NCBI GenBank assembly: GCA_020137815.1
Contig: CM035353.1
Location: 1,798,001 to 1,862,000 of the forward strand
Source: Hormiphora californensis
Taxonomy: Eukaryota; Animalia; Ctenophora
Direction of reading: 5' to 3'
Length of the DNA: 64,000 nt
Positions within the stretch are counted from its first letter, which is position 1. The number at the start of each line of letters is the position of its first letter. This document shows positions 8,314 to 54,828 of the stretch, in pieces. The translations under genes were made by a program, and so were the position numbers. The notes under the pieces were generated by a model, which saw only the letters and a program-made list of their open reading frames with translations, had not been told where the DNA came from and ran no database searches.

Positions 8314-8413
8314 NNNNNNNNNNNNNNNNNNNNNNNNNNNNNNNNNNNNNNNNNNNNNNNNNNNNNNNNNNNNNNNNNNNNNNNNNNNNNNNNNNNNNNN
8401 NNNNNNNNNNNNN
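8314..8413. other. 100-N scaffold gap
   Basis: Run of N. Confidence 1.
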
Positions 8414-36980: not shown

Positions 36981-37948
36981 ATCAATGTGGCTAAGAAGGG
37001 AACTTGTCCCCTTCAAATATTTTTTGAAGTTTTTGTATACAGTCGGACCCCGATTTAACGGCCCCCGATTTAGCGGCACCCCGATTTAACGGCAGGATAA
37101 ATTTCCCCCAAAATTTTTTGAAATTTTTTTTTGAAATTTTTTTTGAAATTTTTTTTGAAAATTTTTTGAAAAACCACGTCCGAATCGTGTTTCGAATCGG
37201 TGCATCTTATTGCGTGTCTTGCCGGTAATTAGACGGTTCGAAACGAACAGATATGTGATCCCCATGAGGCCCATCGAATCGCAATTTTGACGCTTGTTAA
37301 ACTGGCATCATGGGGATCGCGTATCGGTTCGTTTCGAACCGTCTAATTAGCGACAGGACGTGCGATAAGATGCACTGATTCGAAACACGATTCGGACGTG
37401 GTTGATATACCTTTGAAAAATTTTCATAACTTTTTTGCAAAACTTTACAGAATGATTGTCAATGCTTTGATCGGTGCTCTCCATGAATTTTCAGAGAAAA
37501 ATATATTTTGAAATTCAAATTCTTCCTCACCCCGCTTAAAGTGCCCCGATTCAGCATGGTATCACGTATCGGTTCGTCTAATTAGCAGCAAGACATGCGA
37601 TAAGATGTACTGATTCGATAAACGATTCGGACGTGGCTGATATAGTACCTTAGAAAATTTTTATAACTTATTTTGAAATTATTTTGAAATTACTTTCTTT
37701 TTCTAATCAGAAATGATCATGTAATCAATACATGGACATTGCATTTAACACTTAGAGGTGTTTTAGTATAGCATTTTGGACAAAAATAGGGTTTTATGGG
37801 CTAGATATGCTCTACCCCGATTTAACGGACACCCCGATTTAACGGACAAAACCCTTTCCCCCGAGGGTGCCGTTAAATCGGGGTCCGACTGTACTTGATG
37901 GGTTCTCAGTAGTGTCTGTGGTCTGGAAACCCCCTACTACCCTAGTTC

Positions 37949-40900
37949 TCAGATTCCAATATCGAGCACGGAACACCGAATGCTTCCTCCGCTCTTTCTG
38001 AACTCTTGATATGGTGCTATGATTATTTCGTAACCCAGAGAGGTCAGCTTTGCGTGGAGAGAAGGGGAGAATGCCATTCCCACAATGTAGTGTTTATCGC
38101 CAGCTGAAATGTATATTGGGTTTTCAGGAAATAAGTTTTGGGGGAAACAGTTGTACCGATTAGGTTCAGGCAATCTGAGATTTCAGGTTTCAGTGGAAAA
38201 TAGCCGTGGCCTGAACCTGAGGTTCAGGCACGACTGTTTTCCCCCATTGAAAGTCAAATCTTGTAAGACTATTGATTAATTAGTGGTGCTTATACCTTGA
38301 ACGGGAATGGCGTTTGGAACAAAATTTGTTACACAATCTTCCTCGCTAATCTCAATTAAATTTTCCTCTCCATTTATTTCCCTGAAAATGTCAGTTAGTT
38401 TAGATTTCAATTTCAATACTTTTAGATCTTATACAATCTTTACGGTTGCTAGAACACTGATAAATAACTTAATATCTATATTTGCTTACTTGATGAGGTT
38501 CAAAGATTGTTTATCGAAGGCAGGGGTAAACACAAGGGCATGCCCCTTGGAAAGGTTTAACATTGCTGTATCAAGATGGTAACACTTGTCGGAAACTAAT
38601 TTCAGTTTATGGAATTCCGTTCCAGTAAAATCTAAGTTATCCTTGACGAAGTGGTACGATTTTTCACTGGACCTAAAATTGAGTAAAATATATATTAAGC
38701 TTGCAGTATATAGTTTATTGTGATATTTTACAGGAAGATTTTTACATGCACTGTTTACTAACTATTACCTAAACCCAAATCCAAGATAAGCATGCTTCCT
38801 GTCATAGTTATACGCAAAGTCTCCGCAACCCTCCAGAAATGAACCGTTCGGTCTAGAGTCTTGTACCTATAAAGAGAAAGGTGCATGCGAAAGGTTTTGA
38901 GTTTACAGCCCGTCAGAGGGGCCATGCAGTTGCAGTTGCAGTTGCAGTTGCAGTTGCAGTTGCAGTTGGGCCAGTCCCGTGAGACTGTTCAGTCAGAGCT
39001 GACATCTAGTTTTGCTTGGTACCAAATTGCTACCTCCCTGCTTCGTAGACAGGTACCCGCTCCGCCCCAAAAAGGGTCGTTTCTTCCAAGGGATGTTGCA
39101 CGCGATCCACTGGACCGATTTGCATCCGGTTTGTCGCAAAAGACTATAAATTGATCCTAATATACTGGAAAATACCCGAGAATTTTGTCTGTCAACAGGA
39201 AGTGGGTCAAAATTGACACTGAAGTCAAATCTATAATCTGACTTCCGAGAATTTCTGCACTACGCCCATGTGGTTTAGAAGATATTGGGAGATATGTTGA
39301 TGCAAATAGCATCAGAATTTAATGCCGGGTATTTTCCAGTACTCACAAGACTTCAACCTATCTTCTGATACCCTCAGATTCATTCTAAACCATCTGGGAG
39401 TGGGGCAAAATCTCCGGGAAGTCAAATGTGAGTTTCAACTTCAGGGTCAATTTTGACCCACTTCCTGTTGACAGACAAACTTCTCGGGTATTTTCCAGTA
39501 AACTTGGATCAATTTGCAACCTCAGGAAACAAGCGGGATGTAAATCGGTCCAGTGGATCGTGCGCAAGAGCTCTTGAAAGACAAGACCCTTTTTTAGGGG
39601 TCGGAGCAGACACCTTATATGTGTGAGCTCGATCTCGGTCGCGCTAGGTACGTCAATGACACCAATATAGTTTTGCAAGTAAATAAAGGTACATGCATGA
39701 TTTACATATACCCGTTATATTATAACTAGAAAACCCGTTGAAGTAGAGCACCCGTTGACCAAAATTCCCACACTCTCCCTCACCCAGGAGCACCCCTCTC
39801 ACCCACTGCACCAACCCGCACGTGCAGCCTTCAATCACCCGCTGCGTAGCTGGGCTATGGCACTTCCTTGGCAACCCCCCACCATTTGCACGTGGGATAC
39901 TACATCCTCCTCCTCACCATCACGCCACTCATTTGTACTTTATAATAAGGATATGTAGCAGGAACCGACCGAAACAAGTAAACAACCAATTAGAACTCGT
40001 TATTTTGGTCACGTGACTGGTTTAGGTTATCAGCCAATTAGGGCCCAATATTTCCTGATTCGGTGGGTTCCTGCCCTATAGGGTCATTCTTCAGTCTTGA
40101 AACTATAAGGAACTAAATCACTGCATACCTGAAATCCTTGCTTCGTAAACCATCCAATAGTAAGATCTGTTTCCTCTCGTCGAGGCGGGTTATACATAGT
40201 GGATGTGAGCGCTTTACCTCCCCACACAACCGCACAGTTAGCGCAAAACACTTGGTCCACGAGGCCTGGCGAGTTCTCAATGACATCAACCTTCACCCCG
40301 ATAGATGTGAAAGTGGAACGGAGGTCCTCCCATTGCTTCATGGCGAGGCGCTTATCGACTGGTTTACTCATCGTCATGTACACGTTGTGGCCCTGCAGAT
40401 GATTACACATGGTTTAGAAGGTGTGGAAATTGGGCAGAGCTATTATACCTTCACTGCGTCTGCAGCACTATACAGCTATTATAGATTTGTTAGATGCTAT
40501 AATAGTTTCAGTTGTGCTTTGTGTTATACCGCGCGGCCCAAAAAAAACTAAGGGTACGTTGGCCTTCTTTTCTCCCAGAAGTTTAATTTCAATCACTCTG
40601 ATATTTTGTCACAATATTTGTATGGTTACTCATTCGAGGAATCCGGAGTTTCAAAACATAAAAGTGTGAAGTTCATGAATGAACCCAATTTCTCGTTTTT
40701 CGGGTTTTTCCAAGTTTTCTCATGGTTAAATTCGATTTTATTCTTAAAAATAGCAACCATGCATTAGAGTAAACAATAATAAATGGCAATCCGAGTTTTT
40801 ATTAAAAATGAATCAAGTTTAGTTGGTGAAATAAATGATTAAAAAACGGTCATTTTTACCAAACATCGATTTTAACCCGTTTTGACAAGAAATTGGTAAA

Positions 40901-41737
40901 TTCAGGCGCTAAAAATTCGTACGGCCGTTACACTTGATCGATATTGATGTTAGCTAGAATTTCGGCTCTCTATCTAAAAATTCATTTTTACGACTGGAAT
41001 GAATCCTAAATGAACTTGAAAACAAAAAAGGTATTCCAAACCGGAATTTCACAGTCGCCTTTGGGTAACGATTTCCTTTCAAACGCGACTAATTTTAGGT
41101 CAATTGTACCACCACAAGAGACACAGTGGCCACTTTTCCGACACTAGGTCTGGCCAAGTGACCCCTATTGGACCGCTAGCGTCATTACTAAGTGCCAATA
41201 AGCAGGTGTAACGGTCGCGTATCACGTATCACATCTGCTAATTAGGACGGTATACCGATACAGCGTCCGTTAGAATGTAAGTTCTCTTGCTAACACGTCA
41301 TAATTTGATGGGGATCACATGACCCAACCTAGGCTTGGCAAACTGGTCACTGTGATTCTTGTGGTGATCCAATTAAGCTCAAACTGGTCGCGTTCGAAAG
41401 AAAATCGATAGCCAAACAAATTTGTAAAACTTTGGGACCAAAATATGGTCCCGTTTTGGCGTTCATTAAATGTTCATTCGGGCGAAAAAAATGAATTTTC
41501 ATCCAGAGGGCTGAAACTCCGGAATCCTCGAATGAGTAACCATACAAATATTGTGACAAAATATCAGAGTGATTGAAATTAAATTTCTAGGAGAAAAGAA
41601 GGCCAACGTACCCTTAGTTTTTTTTGGGCCGCGTACACAACGGATTATCAAACTGACAATACCTTATGGATTACATCAAATTGAGTCGGTCGGCACATGA
41701 GTAGCCGAGTCCAGCTTCGCACGGCAAAGTTTGTCAT
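37949..41737 (-). CDS. Amidinotransferase/pentein-superfamily enzyme, ArgZ/AgrE arginine-dihydrolase-like, copy B (~286 aa, 6 exons)
   Basis: Exons 41737-41663, 40392-40129, 38866-38769, 38672-38490, 38381-38296 and 38103-37949 are all GT-AG and in phase (861 nt). Motifs: LMCRPTQFDV..GHNVYM, DK.LA.KQW, PGLVDQVFCAN, RREE, LEGCGD, LGFGFRS, YHLDT, PNA, EFRKSGGSIRC. Confidence 0.92.
38925..38968. repeat. (TGCAGT)n microsatellite
   Basis: Read directly from the sequence. Confidence 0.95.
39959..40073 (+). mobile_element. ~109-bp hAT-like MITE CAGGAACCGACCGAA...TTCGGTCGGTTCCTG (also 43894-44002, 51888-51996, 54475-54583, 55157-55265, 58474-58582, ~60250-60349, ~60995-61070, 63171-63279)
   Basis: 15-bp TIR starting CAGG. 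8-bp TSD GTGTGTAG at the 63171 copy. The interior carries two CCAAT boxes around GTCACGTGAC. Confidence 0.9.
40529..41633. mobile_element. ~1.1-kb non-autonomous DNA transposon with ~125-bp TIRs, in intron 1 of copy B
   Basis: CGCGGCCCAAAAAAAACTAAGGGTACGTTGGCCTTCTTTTCTCC...GAGTTTCA is mirrored at 41511-41633. Confidence 0.88.
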
Positions 41738-41798
41738 AGCTATTCGAGATACAAGGGGTTTATTTAAGAGAGAAGGGGGATCCAGGCAACGTATTCTA

Positions 41799-42155
41799 CT
41801 AGCGCACCCACCGGATATGCGCCTCAAGTAAGGGGTTTTGACAAACCACCCGGCTGGATCCATTGCAACCTATAATGTATGTGAGATCGATCTCGGTCGC
41901 TGCGATCTCGGTCGCTTCGCCAGGTGACCCTTTTTCTTGCCCATTTGACGCCAACACATTTATGTGACCAAATTGCTGTAAAGCTGTCAGTTATTCACAC
42001 TTTTGGAAGTTCATGAAGATTTTAGCGATTCAATCTTCATGGTTACCGATCCAGTTGCCATGGCAACAGTAAAAATTGCCGTTTCAGGGCGAAAAAAGCC
42101 GGGTGGGTTTGTCATCAGCCCGTGCTTGAGGCGTACCCGGTGGTTGCACGCTAGC
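41799..42155. mobile_element. Degenerate inverted-repeat element between copies A and B
   Basis: CTAGCGCACCCACCGG..GCCTCAAG..GACAAACCACCCGGCT on the left against AGCCGGGTGGGTTTGTC..CTTGAGGCGTACCCGGTGGTTGCACGCTAG on the right. Confidence 0.7.
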
Positions 42156-42352
42156 AGTTTATACAAAGATGTACAAAGATTAGAAAATTGTTAAAAAGTC
42201 ATTTTACCAACTATAATATACATTGCATATTATGCAATGCAAAAACAAAACCCGGGTTGCCGATAACGACCGGCTTGCCGATAACGACCGGCTTGCCGAT
42301 AACGACCGGCTTGTCAGAATTCCTTGAAATTTTGTGTAGGTCTTGTCGTTGT

Positions 42353-45129
42353 TTAGTTCGTCGCTCCTGTAAGAAATGTTTATGTTGGGATTTTTACTAA
42401 GAAATTGACTCCTTTCTTACTTTAAATTATAAAAAGTGTTTTAACTTACGCGTCTGGCCGATATCGCGTGACTGGCCGATATCTGCAACTGTACACCTAA
42501 CTGCTCCTCCACTCAATAAAAACTGGTCAAATTCCACATGTTCACACACGTACCTATACATGCATCAGTGTAAACTAGCAAGTAGCTCTTTATCTGATAC
42601 ACAGCGTGCCAAGTGTCTGGTGAACTTTTAACACAAACTCGAGTTCGTGTTAAAAGTTCACCTGGCACGTCCTGGATAACAAAAAGTATGTATACAGCTG
42701 CCAAAATTGTTCAGAGTCATACCCGCACGTAATCTCACTAAAATTGCCTAAATTCAAATTAGCTGACTTACCCTAAACTTTCTAAAATGCTCCTAAGCCG
42801 AGGACTGAAGCTGGGACTAACAACCACCGCTTGTCCAGAACTGGGCGAGGTAAAGGAAACACAATTACAAGAAAACGCCATCGCCTCGTCTTCCGTTACT
42901 TCAATCAGTTTGTCGCTTGATCCTGAAAGAATTGAACATTCATTTTTTCCCCGCCCGGGTGAAGGGTGAAGGCCGAAGGCCTTCACCCGGATGCCTTTTG
43001 CAAAAAGGCATAGGGGTTTAGAAAACTAAACGGATATAGTGACTATGTGTAACAACCTGCTCCTTCATAAACCACTTCATTGAGATGTTTTCAAGAAATG
43101 GGTGGCGCGCAATTCCGCAATGTGGTGCGCAATTTACTGCTACTAAAATACAAGGATTTGTTCTATACTGTTTGCGTGATGTATAAATGATCCGCAATGT
43201 CTGTCCCGCCTTCATGTTAGAAATGAAAGGTTGGCGGGGAAACATAACGCATTTACTCTTGTTAACTAATTAGCTTTCGATTTTGTTTTTGACCTACATA
43301 CCTACTCCTTCGAATATAGTTTTCCGACTGGTTTCTTCGAATGCACCAGGGTAGTAGAGAATGTGCCCCAGAGCAAGAGGCGCCATGCATGTATCAAGAT
43401 GATAGAATCTCTCTGGAATAACAGTGATGGGATAAATATCATCAAGTAATCATAAATTTTGGGTAAGAAATTTCGTTTGAGACTAACCATCAATTAGCCG
43501 AACTTTGAAAACATCCTCTCTTTTCAGTGAAAAGAAATCTAGTATGGGTTCGTATGCACTTTCAGCCGTCCTTTGACCCCAACCAAAGAAGAACCTGCTT
43601 AGATCGGCCATGGGGGAAAACTCAGCATTTCCCTCGCAGAAAGTGTAAGGTTTTGCTATTTCATTGAAAGTTGCCACTTCAAAACCCATTTCCCGGTACC
43701 AATTCTCAAATGCCCCCTCCTCGGGCTTCCTCGGCTCGGCAGCCATGTTTGAAATAAGTGCTTTGTTGTTCAGTACAATGGCTGAGTTTGCAGCGAATAC
43801 CATGTCAACGGCACCTGGAGAAGTGTAGTTGGAAATTTCATTATCTTACAAATTTACACAGTTTCTATGTTTCCAATTTAAATTGTTTCTGTTCAGGAAC
43901 CGACCGATACAAGTAAACAACCAATCAGAACTCGTTATTTAGATCACGTGACTGATTATCAGCCAATCAGGGACCAGTATTTTCTGAGTCGGTCGGTTCC
44001 TGGTTCTGTGTCAGACTGTACCAGGTATAGGATCACATGTTAAAGTTTCCAAACCGTGGTTCTTGAATACATTTTGTAGTCTATCCCACTGAAAACTAGC
44101 CTTAGCTTTGTCAACAGGTTCAATACAGCTGAAAAATAAGTGTAATTATTAACTATTAATTAAAACTATTAATTATTAACTATTAATTAAGAGTTTCATC
44201 AAAACTAAATTCACATTCTATGTATGACCACCATTTCAAAAGTATTTACACAGAAGTATAAATGAGGTATAAACTCTTGCCAGTGGCGCGTTATTTCAGA
44301 TACCTTTCTCCCAGCGCGCCGCTGGGAGAAGGTAGCTGTAGTTTATCCGCCACTGGCGGATAAACTGGTTTAAATCACGACGACGATCCCGAGGCGTAGC
44401 CGAGGGAGAGGCGGAGGGGTTTAAACCTATAACGCGTCTGTGACAAGAGTTTATAGGTTATATACCCTGCTTTAGTTGTTTGTTACAAGTATTACAAACT
44501 AACAAGAGAGAGAACACTAATCAAAACACACAAAGAGGAAAAAAAACCTCTCAATTGAGTGTATATTGTTTGGTAACAGTTACTAAGGAGAGAGAGAAAG
44601 AAATAACAAGATATGGGGCATGCCAGACATAACACAGAGGAGTTGAGATAGTGAAACAAAAGGGAAGATAAAGAGAGAGTAATTGACGGAATGTGTTGTT
44701 TCTTTCTCTCCAATTTAGTGTGTAACTCTTCCAAACAGTGTTCCCTCTGTATTTCAGTAAGAACTGATCATTTACACACACTTTGAATGTAACATAGGAG
44801 TTAAAAATAAATAACCTGCCAGTGGGAAATAATCTGCCGCTGGACTGGCTGGTTATCGAGAGCGCGCTAGTGGGACTTCTCGCCACTGGCGCATTATTTA
44901 AGTTAGCAGGGTATATAGTATTATATAATGCTGAGCATATGTAATTGGTAGGGGTTTGTCGACGAACTATGATTTCACTACAATGTACTAACTTCACTAA
45001 TTTTCATTACTAATTTCACTCTCTGAATTACCTCATGTGAGGATTGAGGTTTTGATGGATCACGTCAAACTGGGAGGGCCTGACCATCATAATCCGCCGG
45101 TAAATCTTCGCAGCACATGACACAGACAT
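42353..45129 (-). CDS. Amidinotransferase/pentein-superfamily enzyme, ArgZ/AgrE arginine-dihydrolase-like, copy A (~303 aa, 6-7 exons)
   Basis: Exons 45129-45032, 44128-44022, 43814-43488, 43412-43302, 42922-42772, 42553-42450, plus 42366-42353 (RATN*) or read-through to a stop at 42427. Motifs: MMVRPSQFDV..NLNPHM, DK.KA..QW, PGAVDMVFAAN, RKPEE, CEGNAE, FGWGQRT, RLIDERFYHLDTC, LYYPGAF, FSCN, QFLLSGGAVRC. Confidence 0.92.
44268..44917. mobile_element. Bipartite inverted-repeat element, Crypton-like (error-rich copy ~9410-10010)
   Basis: Module 1 TATAAACTCTTG..CAAGAGTTTATA (44268-44455) plus module 2 TATATACCCTGCT..AGCAGGGTATATA (44459-44917). Internal hairpins and a CCGAGGCGTAGCCGAGG motif. 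Confidence 0.6.
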
Positions 45130-48863: not shown

Positions 48864-51218
48864 ATGGTTACCATGGTTACCATGGTTACCACATTAAGAT
48901 CTGGCTGCATTGTTTTTCTGTTTTTACCCATTTTGGTGGCTACAACAGCTCAGAGTAACGTCACCAATATCGTAACTTTCTACACTGAGGTAGCCGACCA
49001 AGTATACCAAGGACAATCAACTGAGGACGCCAGAGAGTGCCACATGGCAGCTGGAGACCAACTCAGGTTTCACAATAGATATGGTAGGTGGCAGATTCAG
49101 AATTTAACGATCGACCCACGTGTATACCTTAGCTATACCTGCACCATGACCTTTGATTTACTGGCAGCGACAAAAGAAAAAATGGAGAATACATGGGATA
49201 AGGCCCATAGAGGAGCTGGCCTAATTGGTGCCATAGGCCAAGACTTGTCGATGAAGAACACATCCTTGACATGTACCATACAACTGTTTGTCCGTGACAC
49301 GGTAACTTGTTCTGGGAAAAGTGCCTGCCACACTGACGAGTGTGATTGTATCGATGAGGACGTGTTCTACTGTCCCCGAGGACCCCGGGGCTGCATACCC
49401 TTTAGCCAGGTGTGTGATGGTCATGCAGACTGTGAGGGAGGGATGGACGAGTGTCTGTGCAGCAGTGATACTGTGCAAATAACCTGCCTACAGGACAAAT
49501 CCTTCAGTACTTGCGTTTCCAAGAAAGAAGCGTGCAACTCCCAGGAGGCCTTTCAGTACTTACAGTGTGTTGGATTTGATTCTAGAGAGGCGAACTGCAG
49601 TGGTACAGCTGCGGAGGAGGTTATAATTCACCCACCCAAGAAGGTAGGGGATATACTGGACGATTACTACGAGAATCTTCACGAAGTATCAACTACTGCC
49701 ACACGGTTCAACCGATATCCAGAGAAGCTAGAATGTCTCTGGATTCTGGTTGAACAGTTCAACCAACCAAAAGGAGGAGCTGATTGGTCGAAAAATCTAT
49801 GTAGCCGTATAGAAATGATAACTTTGAATGAACATTTGGTGGTTAACCTTGTGTTTAAATGTGACGATACCAGGTTCATGTTGGATGAAATTGTTGAAGG
49901 TGGAAAAAGAATTTGTGATGGGACAATGGACTGTTCAAATGGAAAAGACGAACTATTCTGTCCAGGAAGGTTCTACTGCAGCACCACCCCAAAGGAAATG
50001 GAATGGATAGCTGAGGATGGGGTATGTGATGGGGTACGAGACTGTAAAAATGGTATGGATGAGTGTACTGGGTGCAAGCTGGGTGCCCTTAGCAACAGTA
50101 AATTCCTGATCAGGAATAACATCCTTGCTGGATGTGCCATGTTCGGTGGACTAGCAATAATGCTGTTAAACATGCAAATAGGGTACAAAACTTTCAAGGA
50201 GTCCCCCGAGAGTAAGTGCAGCAAAGTGGATCGGATTTTCCGGATGCAGATTGCGTTTTATGACCTTATCATGGGTCTCTACCTCGTCTTGCTGGTTTCA
50301 GCTGCCTTCGTCCTTCGAGCGAAAGATGACTACTGCCAGTTAGACCAACAATGGAGGTCCGGTATAATGTGTGCAGTACTCGGGTGCCTCTTCTCTGTTT
50401 CTAGCCATGGATCTTTCTTTCTGATAACCGCCATGAGCTTCGTTAGGTTTCTGAATTGTCTGGACCTGGTAAAGGACATCTCGATGAGGGTGATATGGTG
50501 TGGCACCACACTCACTGGTATTGTTAACCTGGCACACGCCCTAGTTCCCATTATCCCACTTTGGCAAGTCCAGCAGTTCTTTCGGACGAGCATCATCATA
50601 TCGGCGATTGACAACCCCTTTCTGAAGAAGTTCGACCAGGGCCATCTAGAGCGAATGCACTCTCTGGTATACAACAGCACTCCGGGGGAACAAGGTATCG
50701 AGACTGTGCTTGAGGACCTACGAAACATCACTTCGGAGCCATCCATCTTCGATTATGTTGATATTGGTTACTATGGAAACAGCCCACTGTGCGTTGCTAA
50801 CGTCTTCAAAAACCAGGCATCCTATCTCTCATACAAGGTAGGGTACTGTGTGGTTGTCATGGTTCTCATTGTACTTCTCGCTGTATTCTACATGGCCATC
50901 GTGGTGGCAAGTCACAAGACCAGCACTCAGGCAGGAGCTGCAGCGGCCTCGTCTGACAATGTCAAGAAGTTAGCCCTAAAAGTGTCCCTTCTGATCGGGA
51001 GCCAAATCGTGGCGTGGATGTCCTACGTCCTCACCCTCATCTACTATACTTGGATCAACCCTACCGCTCCGAGCGCGATTGTCAAGGAGGTCTTCAGTTT
51101 AGTGGTGCTGCCTAGTAACAGTCTCCTGAACCCCATCTTCTACAGTACCATCTACCGGAGAGTAGCTGATTTCGTTGCAAAGTGGTGGAAGAAACAGCAG
51201 GAAGATACCAGCGAGTGA
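48864..51218 (+). CDS. Intronless class A GPCR with LDL-receptor class A repeats (GRL101/RXFP-like 7TM, no LRRs), 784 aa
   Basis: Signal peptide. LDLa motifs FYC...CIPFSQVCDGHADCEGGMDEC, ICDGTMDCSNGKDE and VCDGVRDCKNGMDEC. 7TM with D.IMGLYL (TM2), YC..D..WRSG..C..LG (ECL1/TM3), KVSLLIGSQIVAW (TM6) and LPSNSLLNPIFY (TM7). Confidence 0.95.
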   Translation: MVTMVTMVTTLRSGCIVFLFLPILVATTAQSNVTNIVTFYTEVADQVYQGQSTEDARECHMAAGDQLRFHNRYGRWQIQNLTIDPRVYLSYTCTMTFDLLAATKEKMENTWDKAHRGAGLIGAIGQDLSMKNTSLTCTIQLFVRDTVTCSGKSACHTDECDCIDEDVFYCPRGPRGCIPFSQVCDGHADCEGGMDECLCSSDTVQITCLQDKSFSTCVSKKEACNSQEAFQYLQCVGFDSREANCSGTAAEEVIIHPPKKVGDILDDYYENLHEVSTTATRFNRYPEKLECLWILVEQFNQPKGGADWSKNLCSRIEMITLNEHLVVNLVFKCDDTRFMLDEIVEGGKRICDGTMDCSNGKDELFCPGRFYCSTTPKEMEWIAEDGVCDGVRDCKNGMDECTGCKLGALSNSKFLIRNNILAGCAMFGGLAIMLLNMQIGYKTFKESPESKCSKVDRIFRMQIAFYDLIMGLYLVLLVSAAFVLRAKDDYCQLDQQWRSGIMCAVLGCLFSVSSHGSFFLITAMSFVRFLNCLDLVKDISMRVIWCGTTLTGIVNLAHALVPIIPLWQVQQFFRTSIIISAIDNPFLKKFDQGHLERMHSLVYNSTPGEQGIETVLEDLRNITSEPSIFDYVDIGYYGNSPLCVANVFKNQASYLSYKVGYCVVVMVLIVLLAVFYMAIVVASHKTSTQAGAAAASSDNVKKLALKVSLLIGSQIVAWMSYVLTLIYYTWINPTAPSAIVKEVFSLVVLPSNSLLNPIFYSTIYRRVADFVAKWWKKQQEDTSE

Positions 51219-52049
51219 AGAGCGGAACAGTTTTAGTTGAAAGATACAATTAGGGGGATCATCGTGGACAAGCAATCTCCAGTAAAGTGGCAAACACGGA
51301 TTTTCTGCAGTGGTACGGACGCTATATACTATAATCTATATGATATGGACATTGTACTCTCTATTTGCATAGAAAACTGTGGATTTAGACTGAGCTGAGT
51401 ATATTTGGCTGTTAAATGCTGTTAAATGCTGTTAAATGCTGTTAAATGCTGTTTTGCAGAGCTTAAAACGCATTTTGAAACGTGAATAGTATTAACCAGA
51501 TGCATAATCTAGAATACTTTGAAAATATTTTTTTTCATTTTACAGTTATTACAGATTAACTCTAACTCTATACTAACGTTAGATCTAAAGTGTCTTTATA
51601 GAGACCTGCAGTTATAGGGATCCCTAAAAAAGTTCAGTATTTACACAGCGTTTACACCAGTTAAGCCATTTCAGTATTTCCCACGGTAGCGTGGGAAGAA
51701 AAATTTTGAAATCTGCGCTGTGATTGGCTTAAATTTTCCATCGTCAGAAATTTCAGCCAATCACAGCGCTCTGGTGTAAACGCTGTGTAAATACTGAACT
51801 TTTTAGGGATCCCTATAGTCTGTGATAGTCAGGATGTTTATGGGGTACCTGGTGAAATTCTTGCACAGTATGTACTATCGACAGCTGCAGGAACCGACCG
51901 AAACAAGTAAACAACCAATCAGAACTCGTTATTTAGGTAACGTGACTGGTTATCAGCCAATCAGGGACCAGTATTTCCTGATTCGGTCGGTTCCTGATCG
52001 ACAGAAAACTGGCGACCATGAAAAGCACAGACGATGCTGATCAGATTCC

Positions 52050-53500
52050 CCTACTGGCCTCCCCCAACCCCCTACTGGCATCCCCCAACCCCCTACTGGC
52101 CTCCCCCAACCCCCTACTGGCATCCCCCAACCCCTACTGGCCTGCCCCCACCCCCTACTGGCCTCCCCAAACCCCCTACTGGCCTCCCCCAACCCCCTAC
52201 TGGCCTCCCCGAACCCCCTACTGGCCTGCCCCCACCCCCTACTGGCCTGCCCCCACCCCCTACTGGCCTCCCCCAACCCCCTACTGGCATCCCCCAACCC
52301 CTACTAGCCTCCCCCAACCCCCTACTGGCATCCCCCAACCCCTACTGGCCTCCCCCAACCCCCTACTGGCCTCCCCCAACCCCCTACTGGCCTCCCCGAA
52401 CCCCCTACTGGCCTCCCCAACCCCCTACTGGCCTCCCCCAACCCCCTACTGGCCTTCCCGAACCCCCTACTGGCCTTCCCGAACCCCCTACTGGCCTCCC
52501 CGAACCCCCTACTGGCCTCCCCCAACCCCCTACTGGCATCCCCCAACCCCTACTAGCCTCCCCCAACCCCCTACTGGCATCCCCCAACCCCTACTGGCCT
52601 CCCCCAACCCCCTACTGGCCTCCCCCAACCCCCTACTGGCCTCCCCGAACCCCCTACTGGCCTCCCCAACCCCCTACTGGCCTCCCCCAACCCCCTACTG
52701 GCCTCCCCGAACCCCCTACTGGCCTCCCTGAATCTCCTACTGGCCTCCCCCAACCCCCTACTGGCCTCCCCCAATCCCCCTACTGGCCTCCCCGAACCCC
52801 CTACTGGCCTCCCCCAACCCCACTATGTGGTCAAAACGCGCATTTGTCCGATAGGAATCCTCCGTTTTGAGGGGTTTTGCGCGATTTTGTTAGGCGCTTT
52901 CAGGGAACGTGCACGCTTGCGTGTGCTGTCAATCACCCTGGAAATTGTGTAGCAGTTGTAGGTAATCGTCTAAAGATCATTTTGCTACCCATAACTTGGC
53001 TGAAAGTGCGGCAGGTTTTGGACAGCACGGCATCAAAGTTCGTCCTATAGCCCAAAAACTGGCTTCTGTTCAAAGCGCAACCTAAATTTTGGTATCAAAA
53101 GAAAGCTAGGGGGCTAGAGATTACTATGCAACCTTTCCCCCGCAACCGGTCCGATGCGGTCATGTATTAAATGCGACATTTATGCTAAAAAAACACTTGT
53201 CAGCGCTGGTTTTACACGTAAAAACGCGCAACGAGGTTGGATCTTGGTCAAAATTGAGCGTCTACTGCGCGTTTTCTATCAAAATCACTAGATCTCGCGA
53301 GCCTATCGGACATGAGCACATAGTTAACCCCCTACTGGCCTCCCGAACCCCCTACTGGCCTCCCCAAACCCCCTACTGGCCTCCCGAACCCCCTACTGGC
53401 CTCCCGAACCCCCTACTGGCCTCCCCAAACCCCCTACTGGCCTCTCCCAACCCCCTACTGGCCTCCCCCAACCCCCTACTGGTCTCTCCCAATCCCCACC
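52050..53500. repeat. 20-21-bp C-rich minisatellite (AACCCCCTACTGGCCTCCCCC) at 52050-52822 and 53325-53500, split by a ~500-bp insertion
   Basis: Read directly from the sequence. The insertion at ~52823-53322 has short inverted ends CTATGTG(G/C)TCA. Confidence 0.92.
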
Positions 53501-54828
53501 CCCATTATAGTTCACCACAGTGAGATATACCTCTCATGATTTGTCTCACGAAATACTGCCCTCTCTGAGCTGGGAAGTGTGTAGGACAGTCATGTAAAAT
53601 ATTGGGTGAAAACAGTCGTGCCTCAACTTCAGGTTCAGGCCACGGCTAGGTATTTTCCACTGAGATCTCAGCTGTTATTTCAGGGAATAGCCTATTATAG
53701 ATGTACTGGGACCTGGGATCTCAGGTCTGTTTAAACATTTCCTACCGGCCAGTACACACTCCTTACCAGTAAACTGTAAACCCCATCTGAGCGCACTGTG
53801 ATAGAATCAAATGGGGTATGGCGCCGCCGCCCGCCATACAGCCGGTAAGAGGTAAATACTGTACTCACTCGCTCGGTTCTTCACATTTTTTGGACGTTTT
53901 TGACCATAACTCAACCATTTCTTGACCAATTTGCAAAATCTTGGGATCATTGGAAAGAAGACATTAATTAATATTTTTTTAAATGAGCTCTAGAAAATGA
54001 AAATGGGCGCAAAATGCGCGGTGTTATGGCGCAAAATGCGCGTTTTCGCGTCAAAAACGTCCAAAAAATGTAAAGAACCGAGGCCGAGTGACTGTGAGTA
54101 TTTACCGCTTACTGTACCCTCCTTTGTACCGGCCCATTGCCCAACCTCATATCCATGAGATTGTTGTTGAGTACCTACTCAAATATTGTTGAGTCAACAA
54201 ATTGGAAACACGGTGTTTTCCTTGTAGAAATAAATAAAACTGAGTATAAAACTATCTCAACGAATATTTTAGCGCAGATTTAAAACCAAACAAAAAATTG
54301 ACTTCTAAAACACCAGAAAACATAATCTCAAATTTTGAGTCAAAATGTCCAAAACTATATTCTCTCTGTGTAAAACTACATGGGGGTAGGGGTCACACGC
54401 ACAAAAAAGTACACAATGTTTGTAACTCAAATGTTTATATCTGAACTAATAATCAATATTCGGTTACTCGTAATCAGGAACCGACCGAACCAAGTAAACA
54501 ACCAATCAGAGCTCGTTATTTAGGTCACGCGACTGGTTATCAGCCAATCAGGGACCAGTATTTCCTGATTTGGTCGGTTCCTGCATACCACGCAATATAT
54601 TTGAATCTGAACAACACTGCACAGTAGTGACAAAAAAACATAAAACTAAAACTCTAATTGTGGCACATAATGAATCTGAATCTACTTTTTTAAGTGCCCG
54701 CATGTTCAAATTGGCATTACACCACACGTTATATATAAAGTCCTGCGGTACGTGATGCAATATATCTGAATTGTCCCGGAGATCGAGAGTCAGCATGGGT
54801 CCCCCACAGCTGGGGGCAGTGGGACACA

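Follow-up and report, generated by a model that had tools for sequence, protein, structure and literature searches.

To date, a dihydrolase acting on free arginine is established for cyanobacteria, as ArgZ of Synechocystis (Sll1336) and AgrE of Anabaena (Alr4995), and no description of such an enzyme from an animal was found in the literature. In Mycobacterium tuberculosis, the related protein Rv2323c is annotated as a dimethylarginine dimethylaminohydrolase (DDAH) and sits in the rocD-rocE cluster; its gene, induced >20-fold by arginine, is required if the organism, which has no arginase, is to grow on arginine and channel it to proline and glutamate (PMC4569260). The authors of that study knew of no functional study of a prokaryotic DDAH. 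Here, we followed up an earlier note on a 64,000-nucleotide stretch of the genome of the ctenophore Hormiphora californensis (assembly GCA_020137815.1, contig CM035353.1, positions 1,798,001 to 1,862,000), hereafter the window, which had described a tandem pair of intron-containing arginine dihydrolase-like genes, copies A and B. The window lies 1.8 Mb along this contig (C4) of an assembly of 110.7 Mb and 45 contigs. The A/B genes add a new member from animals to an enzyme family already known. The explanation that we regard as probable overall is that of four constrained ctenophore dihydrolase-like genes, which would owe their presence to a transfer linked to giant viruses and would have ArgZ-like chemistry.

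The predicted ctenophore proteins have the same fold as the N-terminal domain of ArgZ and AgrE (PDB 6juy, 6jv0 and 6lrf), with 32–33% identity over this domain, and have in common with it the Cys-His-Glu set, the Arg, Glu and Asp residues of the substrate site and the Asn replaced in the N71S variant. They differ in being single-domain proteins without the ornithine cyclodeaminase-like C-terminal part, in one extra residue within the N-terminal INPWM motif, in the EGxAE of the A-type for EGAGD, and in the eukaryotic, intron-bearing nature of their genes. The Rv2323c type shares the single domain, the length, ~30% identity and the same invariant residues including VFxAN, whereas this type and its Solirubrobacteraceae fusions with ornithine aminotransferase (OAT) occupy a separate tree branch and are bacterial, being found in roc-type clusters or as fusions. 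ArgZ-like proteins of giant viruses (IMG/VR contigs labelled GVMAG and related contigs) are 33–35% identical and have FDVIHxxLNxHM and SGGSx(K/R)C(S/C)VLDI in common with the ctenophore proteins, but their genes are intronless and lie in viral genomes of 19–29% GC. Animal DDAH1/DDAH2 and Pseudomonas DDAH belong to the same superfamily, with the same general fold and Cys-His-Glu catalysis on the guanidino carbon, but show 15–22% identity and a root-mean-square deviation (rmsd) of 3–4 Å. Finally, the same ArgZ/Rv2323c-like branch includes a single-domain animal protein in which all motifs are present, the Caenorhabditis 'Amidinotransferase' (Q23042_CAEEL, NP_508952.2); it is without the insertion (YSINPWM), and the best tree places it apart from the ctenophore/virus clade.

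Structure of the tandem pair and its second copy

As read from the sequence, A and B are two intact tandem genes with spliceosomal introns, each encoding a predicted single-domain pentein cysteine hydrolase. Exon borders follow the window sequence and natural orthologues aligned to it collinearly with tblastn, and the pieces were read from a three-frame translation of the minus strand between 37900 and 45200. Copy A runs from 45129 to 42427 on the minus strand and comprises six exons with 921 nt of coding sequence (306 aa), separated by introns of 903, 207, 75, 379 and 218 nt. Exon 1 (45032..45129) opens with the ATG at 45129, includes ...RRIMMVRPSQFDVIHQNLNPHM and ends at the donor AG/GTAATT in phase 2; exon 2 (44022..44128) encodes SCIEPVDKAKA...DPIPG. 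Exon 3 (43488..43814) carries DMVFAAN, PRKPEE, CEGNAEF and GWGQRT and ends in RLID^, and exon 4 (43302..43412) carries ERFYHLDTC, with the predicted catalytic His and guanidinium-binding Asp. Exon 5 (42772..42922) encodes KLIEVTEDEAMAFSCNCVSF..., and exon 6 with the stop (42427..42553) holds FLLSGGAVRC, with the predicted catalytic Cys.

Copy B follows on the same strand, after a spacer of 689 nt from the A stop to the B ATG (41738..42426). It extends from 41737 to 37949 in six exons, with 861 nt of coding sequence (286 aa) and introns of 1270, 1262, 96, 108 and 192 nt. Its exon 1 (41663..41737, ATG at 41737) encodes MTNFAVRSWTRLLMCRPTQFDVIHK, exon 2 (40129..40392) GHNVYM..., DQVFCAN and PRREE, exon 3 (38769..38866) FLEGCGDF...GFGFR, exon 4 (38490..38672) KCYHLDTA with the predicted catalytic His, exon 5 (38296..38381) EINGEENLIEISEEDCVTNFVPNAIPVQ, and exon 6 with the stop (37949..38103) KSGGSIRC with the predicted catalytic Cys. 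All ten introns of the two genes have GT...AG ends with pyrimidine-rich acceptors, and orthologues agree with the junction peptides (e.g., NPHM^SCIEP, RLID^ERFYHLDT, K^GHNVYM and GFGFR^SSEK). The earlier proposal of two complete spliced open reading frames (ORFs) thus stood: the span 37949-45129 is exactly B stop to A ATG, every piece listed was visible in the translation, and B has the 286 residues stated, A having 306 where ~303 had been estimated. A (TGCAAC)n-like microsatellite lies in B intron 2, near 38913-38982.

Both gene models end 5–22 residues past the catalytic Cys, and neither includes a C-terminal ornithine cyclodeaminase-like domain. A-type orthologue proteins stop where copy A stops, and P0137, a B-type fragment of a different species, starts with a Met and a leader of its own. 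Copies A and B are therefore more likely to encode separate proteins than an A-B fusion joined by one splice.

A whole-genome search showed that the tandem pair has a counterpart, A'-B', on contig C5 (6748149-6758922; loci L013-L015), in the same order and orientation. Between the C4 and C5 pairs, 12 of 12 exons align without gaps at 90–99% identity and the AG acceptors and GT donors are kept at 10 of 10 introns, while the introns themselves have diverged. Synonymous divergence (dS) is 0.28–0.29 and nonsynonymous divergence (dN) 0.016–0.027, giving a dN/dS of 0.06–0.09. These values, together with the conserved exons and splice sites, indicate that all four genes have been under strong purifying selection since the duplication. 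The introns differ in length as well: A' intron 1 measures ~4.2 kb where that of A has 903 nt, and B' intron 3, which has probably taken up a retroelement fragment, measures ~1.24 kb where that of B has 96 nt. Within B' intron 3 lies a 196-aa ORF (L002:2154-2744, that is, G000:C5:6757246-6757836), which we read as the tail of a putative retroelement protein. Dispersed repeats at 37036-37893 and 39713-39951 of the window are 84–88% identical to stretches of A' intron 1 (C5:6750728-6751873).

Types A and B occur in several ctenophore species. The closest named proteins, from Bolinopsis microptera and Mnemiopsis leidyi, are 57–70% identical per exon. Relatives with full ORFs were found on intronless contigs of 1.0–1.7 kb (P0005, P0002 and P0314), which correspond to spliced mRNAs, and exon-sized genomic ORFs ending at the donor of B exon 2 were found in at least six other ctenophore-like genomes (P0001, P0003, P0004, P0007, P0009, P0011 and P0018). 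A Bolinopsis-like genomic ORF (P0313/P0315) likewise stops at the site of A intron 3. The same Bolinopsis-like A gene has an apparent extra intron just before GKPYMF, which is missing from exon 3 of copy A. Such an extra intron points to a continuing turnover of introns in the A/B gene family.

Family membership and giant-virus relatives

Full-length comparisons were made with natural, transcript-derived orthologues (P0005, P0160 and P0312 of the A-type, P0002 of the B-type), and the exons of the window were searched singly. In an alignment of 15 sequences that includes Mycobacterium-type proteins (A1), 18 of 18 invariant columns are kept in both A and B. The motifs are DMVFAAN, PRKPEE, CEGNAEF, GQRT, FYHLDTC, FSCNC and GGAVRC in copy A and DQVFCAN, PRREE, EGCGDF, GFRS, CYHLDTA, VPNAI and GGSIRC in copy B. 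The catalytic Cys, His and Glu fall in GGAVRC, FYHLDT and CEG in A and in GGSIRC, CYHLDT and LEG in B, all in columns invariant in A1, so that the pentein triad and the substrate-site motifs claimed in the earlier note are all present.

Single exons already reach this family. B exon 2 alone matches Pfam PF19420 (DDAH_eukar) with 32.6 bits (E-value 6.5e-8), above the gathering cut-off of 23 bits, and the orthologues score 58–85 bits; in the PDB, ArgZ (Sll1336) is matched by A exon 3 (1e-4) and B exon 2 (2e-6). Such matches from single exons indicate a likeness far beyond chance. Across the whole domain, a phmmer search of the PDB with A-type P0005 gave 7.7e-41 for ArgZ and 3.6e-39 for AgrE, compared to 3e-9 for Pseudomonas DDAH and 0.3 for mammalian DDAH1. 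With B-type P0002 the values were 1.1e-34 for ArgZ and 3.2e-31 for AgrE, and no DDAH matched at an E-value of 1 or below.

Structure gave the same picture. AlphaFold was applied to the A-type orthologue P0005 rather than to a window protein; the model has a mean predicted local distance difference test score of 92.9 and matches the structures of ArgZ, AgrE, DDAH, AstB, ADI and AGAT, that is, the pentein five-fold beta-beta-alpha-beta propeller (Pfam clan CL0197). In Foldseek searches of the PDB, the N-domain of ArgZ aligned with template modelling (TM) scores of 0.86/0.92 and an rmsd of 1.5–1.6 Å at 32–33% identity, and human DDAH-1 with a TM score of 0.78 and an rmsd of 3.2 Å at 17% identity. 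Sequence and fold therefore agree with the proposal that the proteins are ArgZ/AgrE-like rather than animal-DDAH-like. An identity as animal-type DDAH was excluded on the phmmer values (0.3 for the A-type, none for the B-type) and on the fold comparison, in which animal DDAHs stand well behind ArgZ/AgrE at 15–18% identity. On sequence grounds, A and B belong to the branch of ArgZ/AgrE and Mycobacterium Rv2323c-type enzymes.

With B exon 2 as query, HMMER returned 572 relatives among 1.84 billion representatives, bacterial for the most part. A small subgroup carries a one-residue N-terminal insertion, FDVIH-x-x-LN-x-HM against Y-x-INPWM elsewhere, and this insertion is limited to a clade of ctenophore and giant-virus proteins. 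Among GTDB species representatives, nothing was >40% identical to the insertion-bearing AT-rich group, and no bacterial donor could be named. In IMG/VR, the best matches to this group were GVMAG-labelled contigs and viral contigs of 113–175 kb. The viral contigs have 19–29% GC and packed intronless ORFs, and in their proteins both the insertion and the C-terminal SGGSx(K/R)C(S/C)VLDI recur. Among the genes flanking the viral loci is one for an RNA polymerase subunit in which Rpb3 and Rpb11 are fused, a trait that we take to be typical of Nucleocytoviricota; others encode DHFR-TS, asparagine synthase and F-box and PA-RING proteins, alongside many ORFans. In four viral loci (L052, L054, L056 and L131), the ArgZ-like gene lies near genes for asparagine synthase, DHFR-TS, adenylosuccinate lyase and heme oxygenase; L054 also holds an unusual 962-aa ORF that fuses an SNF2 helicase to DNA polymerase III alpha. 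The mimivirus early-promoter motif was not enriched in the viral loci.

The main tree (IQ-TREE, LG+C20+F+G4) comprised 78 rows and was built without ArgZ, C. elegans ZK1307.1, nematode genes of the ZK1307.1 type and most eukaryote proteomes. The ctenophore-type clade, made up of A, B and a 'type C', was supported at 98/98, the viral clade at 93/79 and the two jointly at 100/100; the joint clade was retained when the indel region was removed (Shimodaira-Hasegawa-like approximate likelihood-ratio test 97). The type C proteins (P0022, P0152, L132 and L133), which fall inside the ctenophore-type clade, come from transcript-like, eukaryote-like contigs. Caenorhabditis Q23042 was placed elsewhere. 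The A/B family is thus not unique to ctenophores among animals, as this Caenorhabditis homologue demonstrates. Protein searches and tree bear out that A and B are not part of a widespread animal clade; no other named eukaryote was among the matches listed in the protein searches. It should be noted that one very divergent relative from a JGI metagenome (P0122, 296 aa) has FYDGD for FYHLD, and hence no catalytic His, and a GGGQNC C-terminus. Owing to its long branch it was left out of the final trees, and it may be a non-catalytic or re-purposed relative.

Predicted chemistry, history and alternatives

If the A/B enzymes act as ArgZ does, the catalytic Cys would attack the guanidinium carbon of free L-arginine in two successive hydrolyses. 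The products would be ornithine, CO2 and 2 NH3, with no urea, and the ornithine would feed the ornithine aminotransferase of this genome. By analogy with the characterised relatives, we lean slightly towards this arginine dihydrolase chemistry for A and B. The earlier note had taken the Asn of VFxAN as a marker of it. This Asn is kept (VFAAN in A, VFCAN in B) and is the residue mutated in PDB 6juz, 'ArgZ(N71S)'; we assume its role in ArgZ from PDB entry titles. However, it is invariant in 15 of 15 A1 sequences, including proteins that NCBI names dimethylargininase. Because it is present in the Mycobacterium-type branch too, it cannot by itself mark dihydrolase chemistry in the clade, and its proposed use as a marker was not upheld.

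Gene fusions are one guide to the product. We found 433 proteins that join an N-terminal ArgZ/Rv2323c-like domain to an ornithine aminotransferase, the named ones being from Solirubrobacteraceae and other Actinomycetota (P0026, P0316-P0434); they look like a one-polypeptide pathway from arginine through ornithine to glutamate semialdehyde. Their sources give them no other name than 'ornithine--oxo-acid transaminase'. Taken together with the genetics of Rv2323c, these fusions make ornithine the likelier product for the whole ArgZ/Rv2323c branch. The ctenophore genome holds arginase-family genes and a clear ornithine aminotransferase gene. Since arginase-family genes are present, any dihydrolase route would run parallel to arginase, and of the arginase-independent, urea-free route proposed in the earlier note the part that would replace arginase does not stand. 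The EGxAE of the A-type may reflect a preference for another guanidino substrate than that of B.

As to history, the gene would have entered an early ctenophore by a horizontal transfer involving giant viruses, in either direction, the wider family being bacterial. It would have been intronless at entry and then duplicated into A and B, each of which would have gained its own introns; the A-B pair would have been copied to a second chromosome much later. Consistent with this order, none of the ten intron positions is shared between A and B, as expected if an intronless ancestor duplicated before intron gain. The horizontal acquisition of a bacterial-type gene, as first suggested, is borne out in part: the sister group, supported at 100/100, is non-animal, but a monophyly of ctenophore and nematode proteins was not rejected at 5% (see below). 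Since the nearest relatives are giant-virus genes, the tree does not show a direct bacterial donor. A fuller picture, which we put forward tentatively as possible, is that a distinct subfamily of one-step arginine dihydrolases is common to ctenophores and a group of marine giant viruses. Its gene would have crossed between a giant virus and an early ctenophore, acquired introns and reached four constrained copies in the animal, where it would provide a urea-free route beside arginase, with the A-type acting on a second guanidino substrate.

Several observations speak against the probable explanation given at the outset. The chemistry of the ctenophore/giant-virus subfamily is predicted by analogy. 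In the NCBIfam model Arg_dihydro (NF052232), P0005, P0002 and P0160 reached 147–174 bits, under the cut-off of 450 (1025 for the bifunctional NF052231), and viral relatives reached 199–228 bits. In NF045659, the Mycobacterium-type dimethylargininase, the ctenophore orthologues scored 165–185 bits, under the cut-off of 300, and a true member (P0183) 436 bits. The ctenophore proteins thus appear about equally far from both equivalogs and qualify for neither named function. EGxGD, found in all other members of A1, is EG(N/A)AE in the A-type, which has therefore lost an otherwise universal Asp. On the side of history, the viral and ctenophore clades are sisters and not nested, which agrees with a transfer in either direction. 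A constrained monophyly of ctenophore and nematode proteins was 49 log-likelihood units worse, but with a p of 0.067 in the approximately unbiased (AU) test it was not rejected at 5%. The Bolinopsis protein is named 'ZK1307.1-like' by NCBI, and ZK1307.1 lay outside the sampling of the tree. A capsid gene of nucleocytoplasmic large DNA viruses was not found in the ctenophore genome, in a search without positive control. Lastly, one presumed RNA run (X1, contigs), compared with 37940-43939, gave a single 33-nt chance match with 2 mismatches, neutral in itself.

The alternative that survives best keeps the genes and their origin and changes the chemistry: the enzymes would stop at citrulline, as an arginine deiminase does, or would act on methylated arginines, as DDAH does, and so clear inhibitors of nitric oxide synthase, or act on agmatine, homoarginine or a phosphagen precursor. 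We consider it somewhat unlikely. The top NCBIfam score of the A/B-type orthologues is indeed the one for Mycobacterium-type dimethylargininase, slightly over Arg_dihydro, but every such score is under its curated cut-off. Pfam places the orthologues in DDAH_eukar, yet the solved DDAHs are much more distant than ArgZ and AgrE. Moreover, the name DDAH in Mycobacterium rests on annotation, the genetics showing a role in arginine use (PMC4569260), and in that very branch the OAT fusions speak for ornithine as product. The EGxAE of the A-type, which suggests an altered substrate pocket, and the arginase-family genes, which already cover the step from arginine to ornithine, favour this alternative.

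An unlikely reading is vertical inheritance, in which an ancient eukaryotic or early-animal gene was kept in ctenophores and nematodes and lost in nearly all other lineages, giant viruses having captured host copies. Giant viruses frequently acquire host genes, a Caenorhabditis homologue with all motifs exists, and the eukaryote-like, transcript-like type C relatives sit within the ctenophore-type clade. In the ESM Atlas, both queries gave one nearest cluster, 48% eukaryotic and mostly nematode. The AU test can be read in its favour, whereas the likelihood deficit of the same constrained tree is counted against it. So are the position of the nematode proteins elsewhere in the best tree, with YSINPWM and without the insertion of the clade, the lack of other named eukaryotes among the matches listed and the 0 of 10 shared intron positions, as for an intronless ancestor. 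That the locus is bacterial or viral contamination or decaying pseudogenes is highly improbable and, as far as sequence allows, refuted: no RNA support was obtained in this species, but the genes have ten spliceosomal introns, an animal receptor gene as neighbour, a GC content of ~0.42 like that of their surroundings, a second locus with exons 88–95% identical and conserved splice sites at the low dN/dS given above, and orthologues in annotated Bolinopsis and Mnemiopsis chromosomes.

Chromosomal surroundings and biological meaning

The nearest recognisable neighbour, 3.7 kb off, is a 784-aa open frame on the plus strand (48864-51218) with LDL-receptor class A and rhodopsin-family seven-transmembrane domains, resembling LGR/relaxin-receptor-like G protein-coupled receptors. 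With their introns, this host neighbour and a second constrained locus, the A/B genes are integrated in the host chromosome, and their description in the earlier note as intron-bearing, duplicated chromosomal genes is borne out. Elsewhere in the window, an assembly gap of 100 N lies at 8314-8413, and a 2-kb stretch (52001-54000) has a GC content of 0.56 and a GC skew of -0.40, unlike the remaining window.

In the literature, no paper was found on the A/B family in ctenophores, other animals or giant viruses. The nine confirmed horizontal transfers of Mnemiopsis do not include it (Hernandez & Ryan 2018, PMC6005172), and the ctenophore nitric-oxide paper makes no mention of DDAH or arginase. The family itself is already present in animal annotations, as the Caenorhabditis 'Amidinotransferase' Q23042 and, in Bolinopsis and Mnemiopsis, under the labels uncharacterised or hypothetical protein. 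The suggestion that no such metazoan route had been described agrees with the papers found, while the family as such is not new to animals. New here are the A'-B' pair on C5, the lack of any intron shared by A and B, the giant-virus sister clade with the insertion and the separate Caenorhabditis homologue. With a giant-virus sister group, independent intronisation and four constrained copies, the history of these genes is more interesting than a plain horizontal gene transfer from bacteria.

With no intron position in common, the two old paralogues illustrate cleanly how introns can be gained independently in nature once a gene has been acquired. The sister relation would stand as a clear instance of Nucleocytoviricota and an animal lineage exchanging a metabolic gene, and an unstudied arginine enzyme is flagged in giant viruses. 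Our comparisons also suggest that the label 'dimethylargininase' on thousands of bacterial proteins, and 'ornithine--oxo-acid transaminase' on the fusions, may hide arginine dihydrolases. If the chemistry is ArgZ-like, comb jellies would possess a second, urea-free route of arginine breakdown, which would bear on nitrogen excretion, on the arginine supply of nitric oxide synthase and on the supply of ornithine, proline and polyamines in an early-branching phylum.

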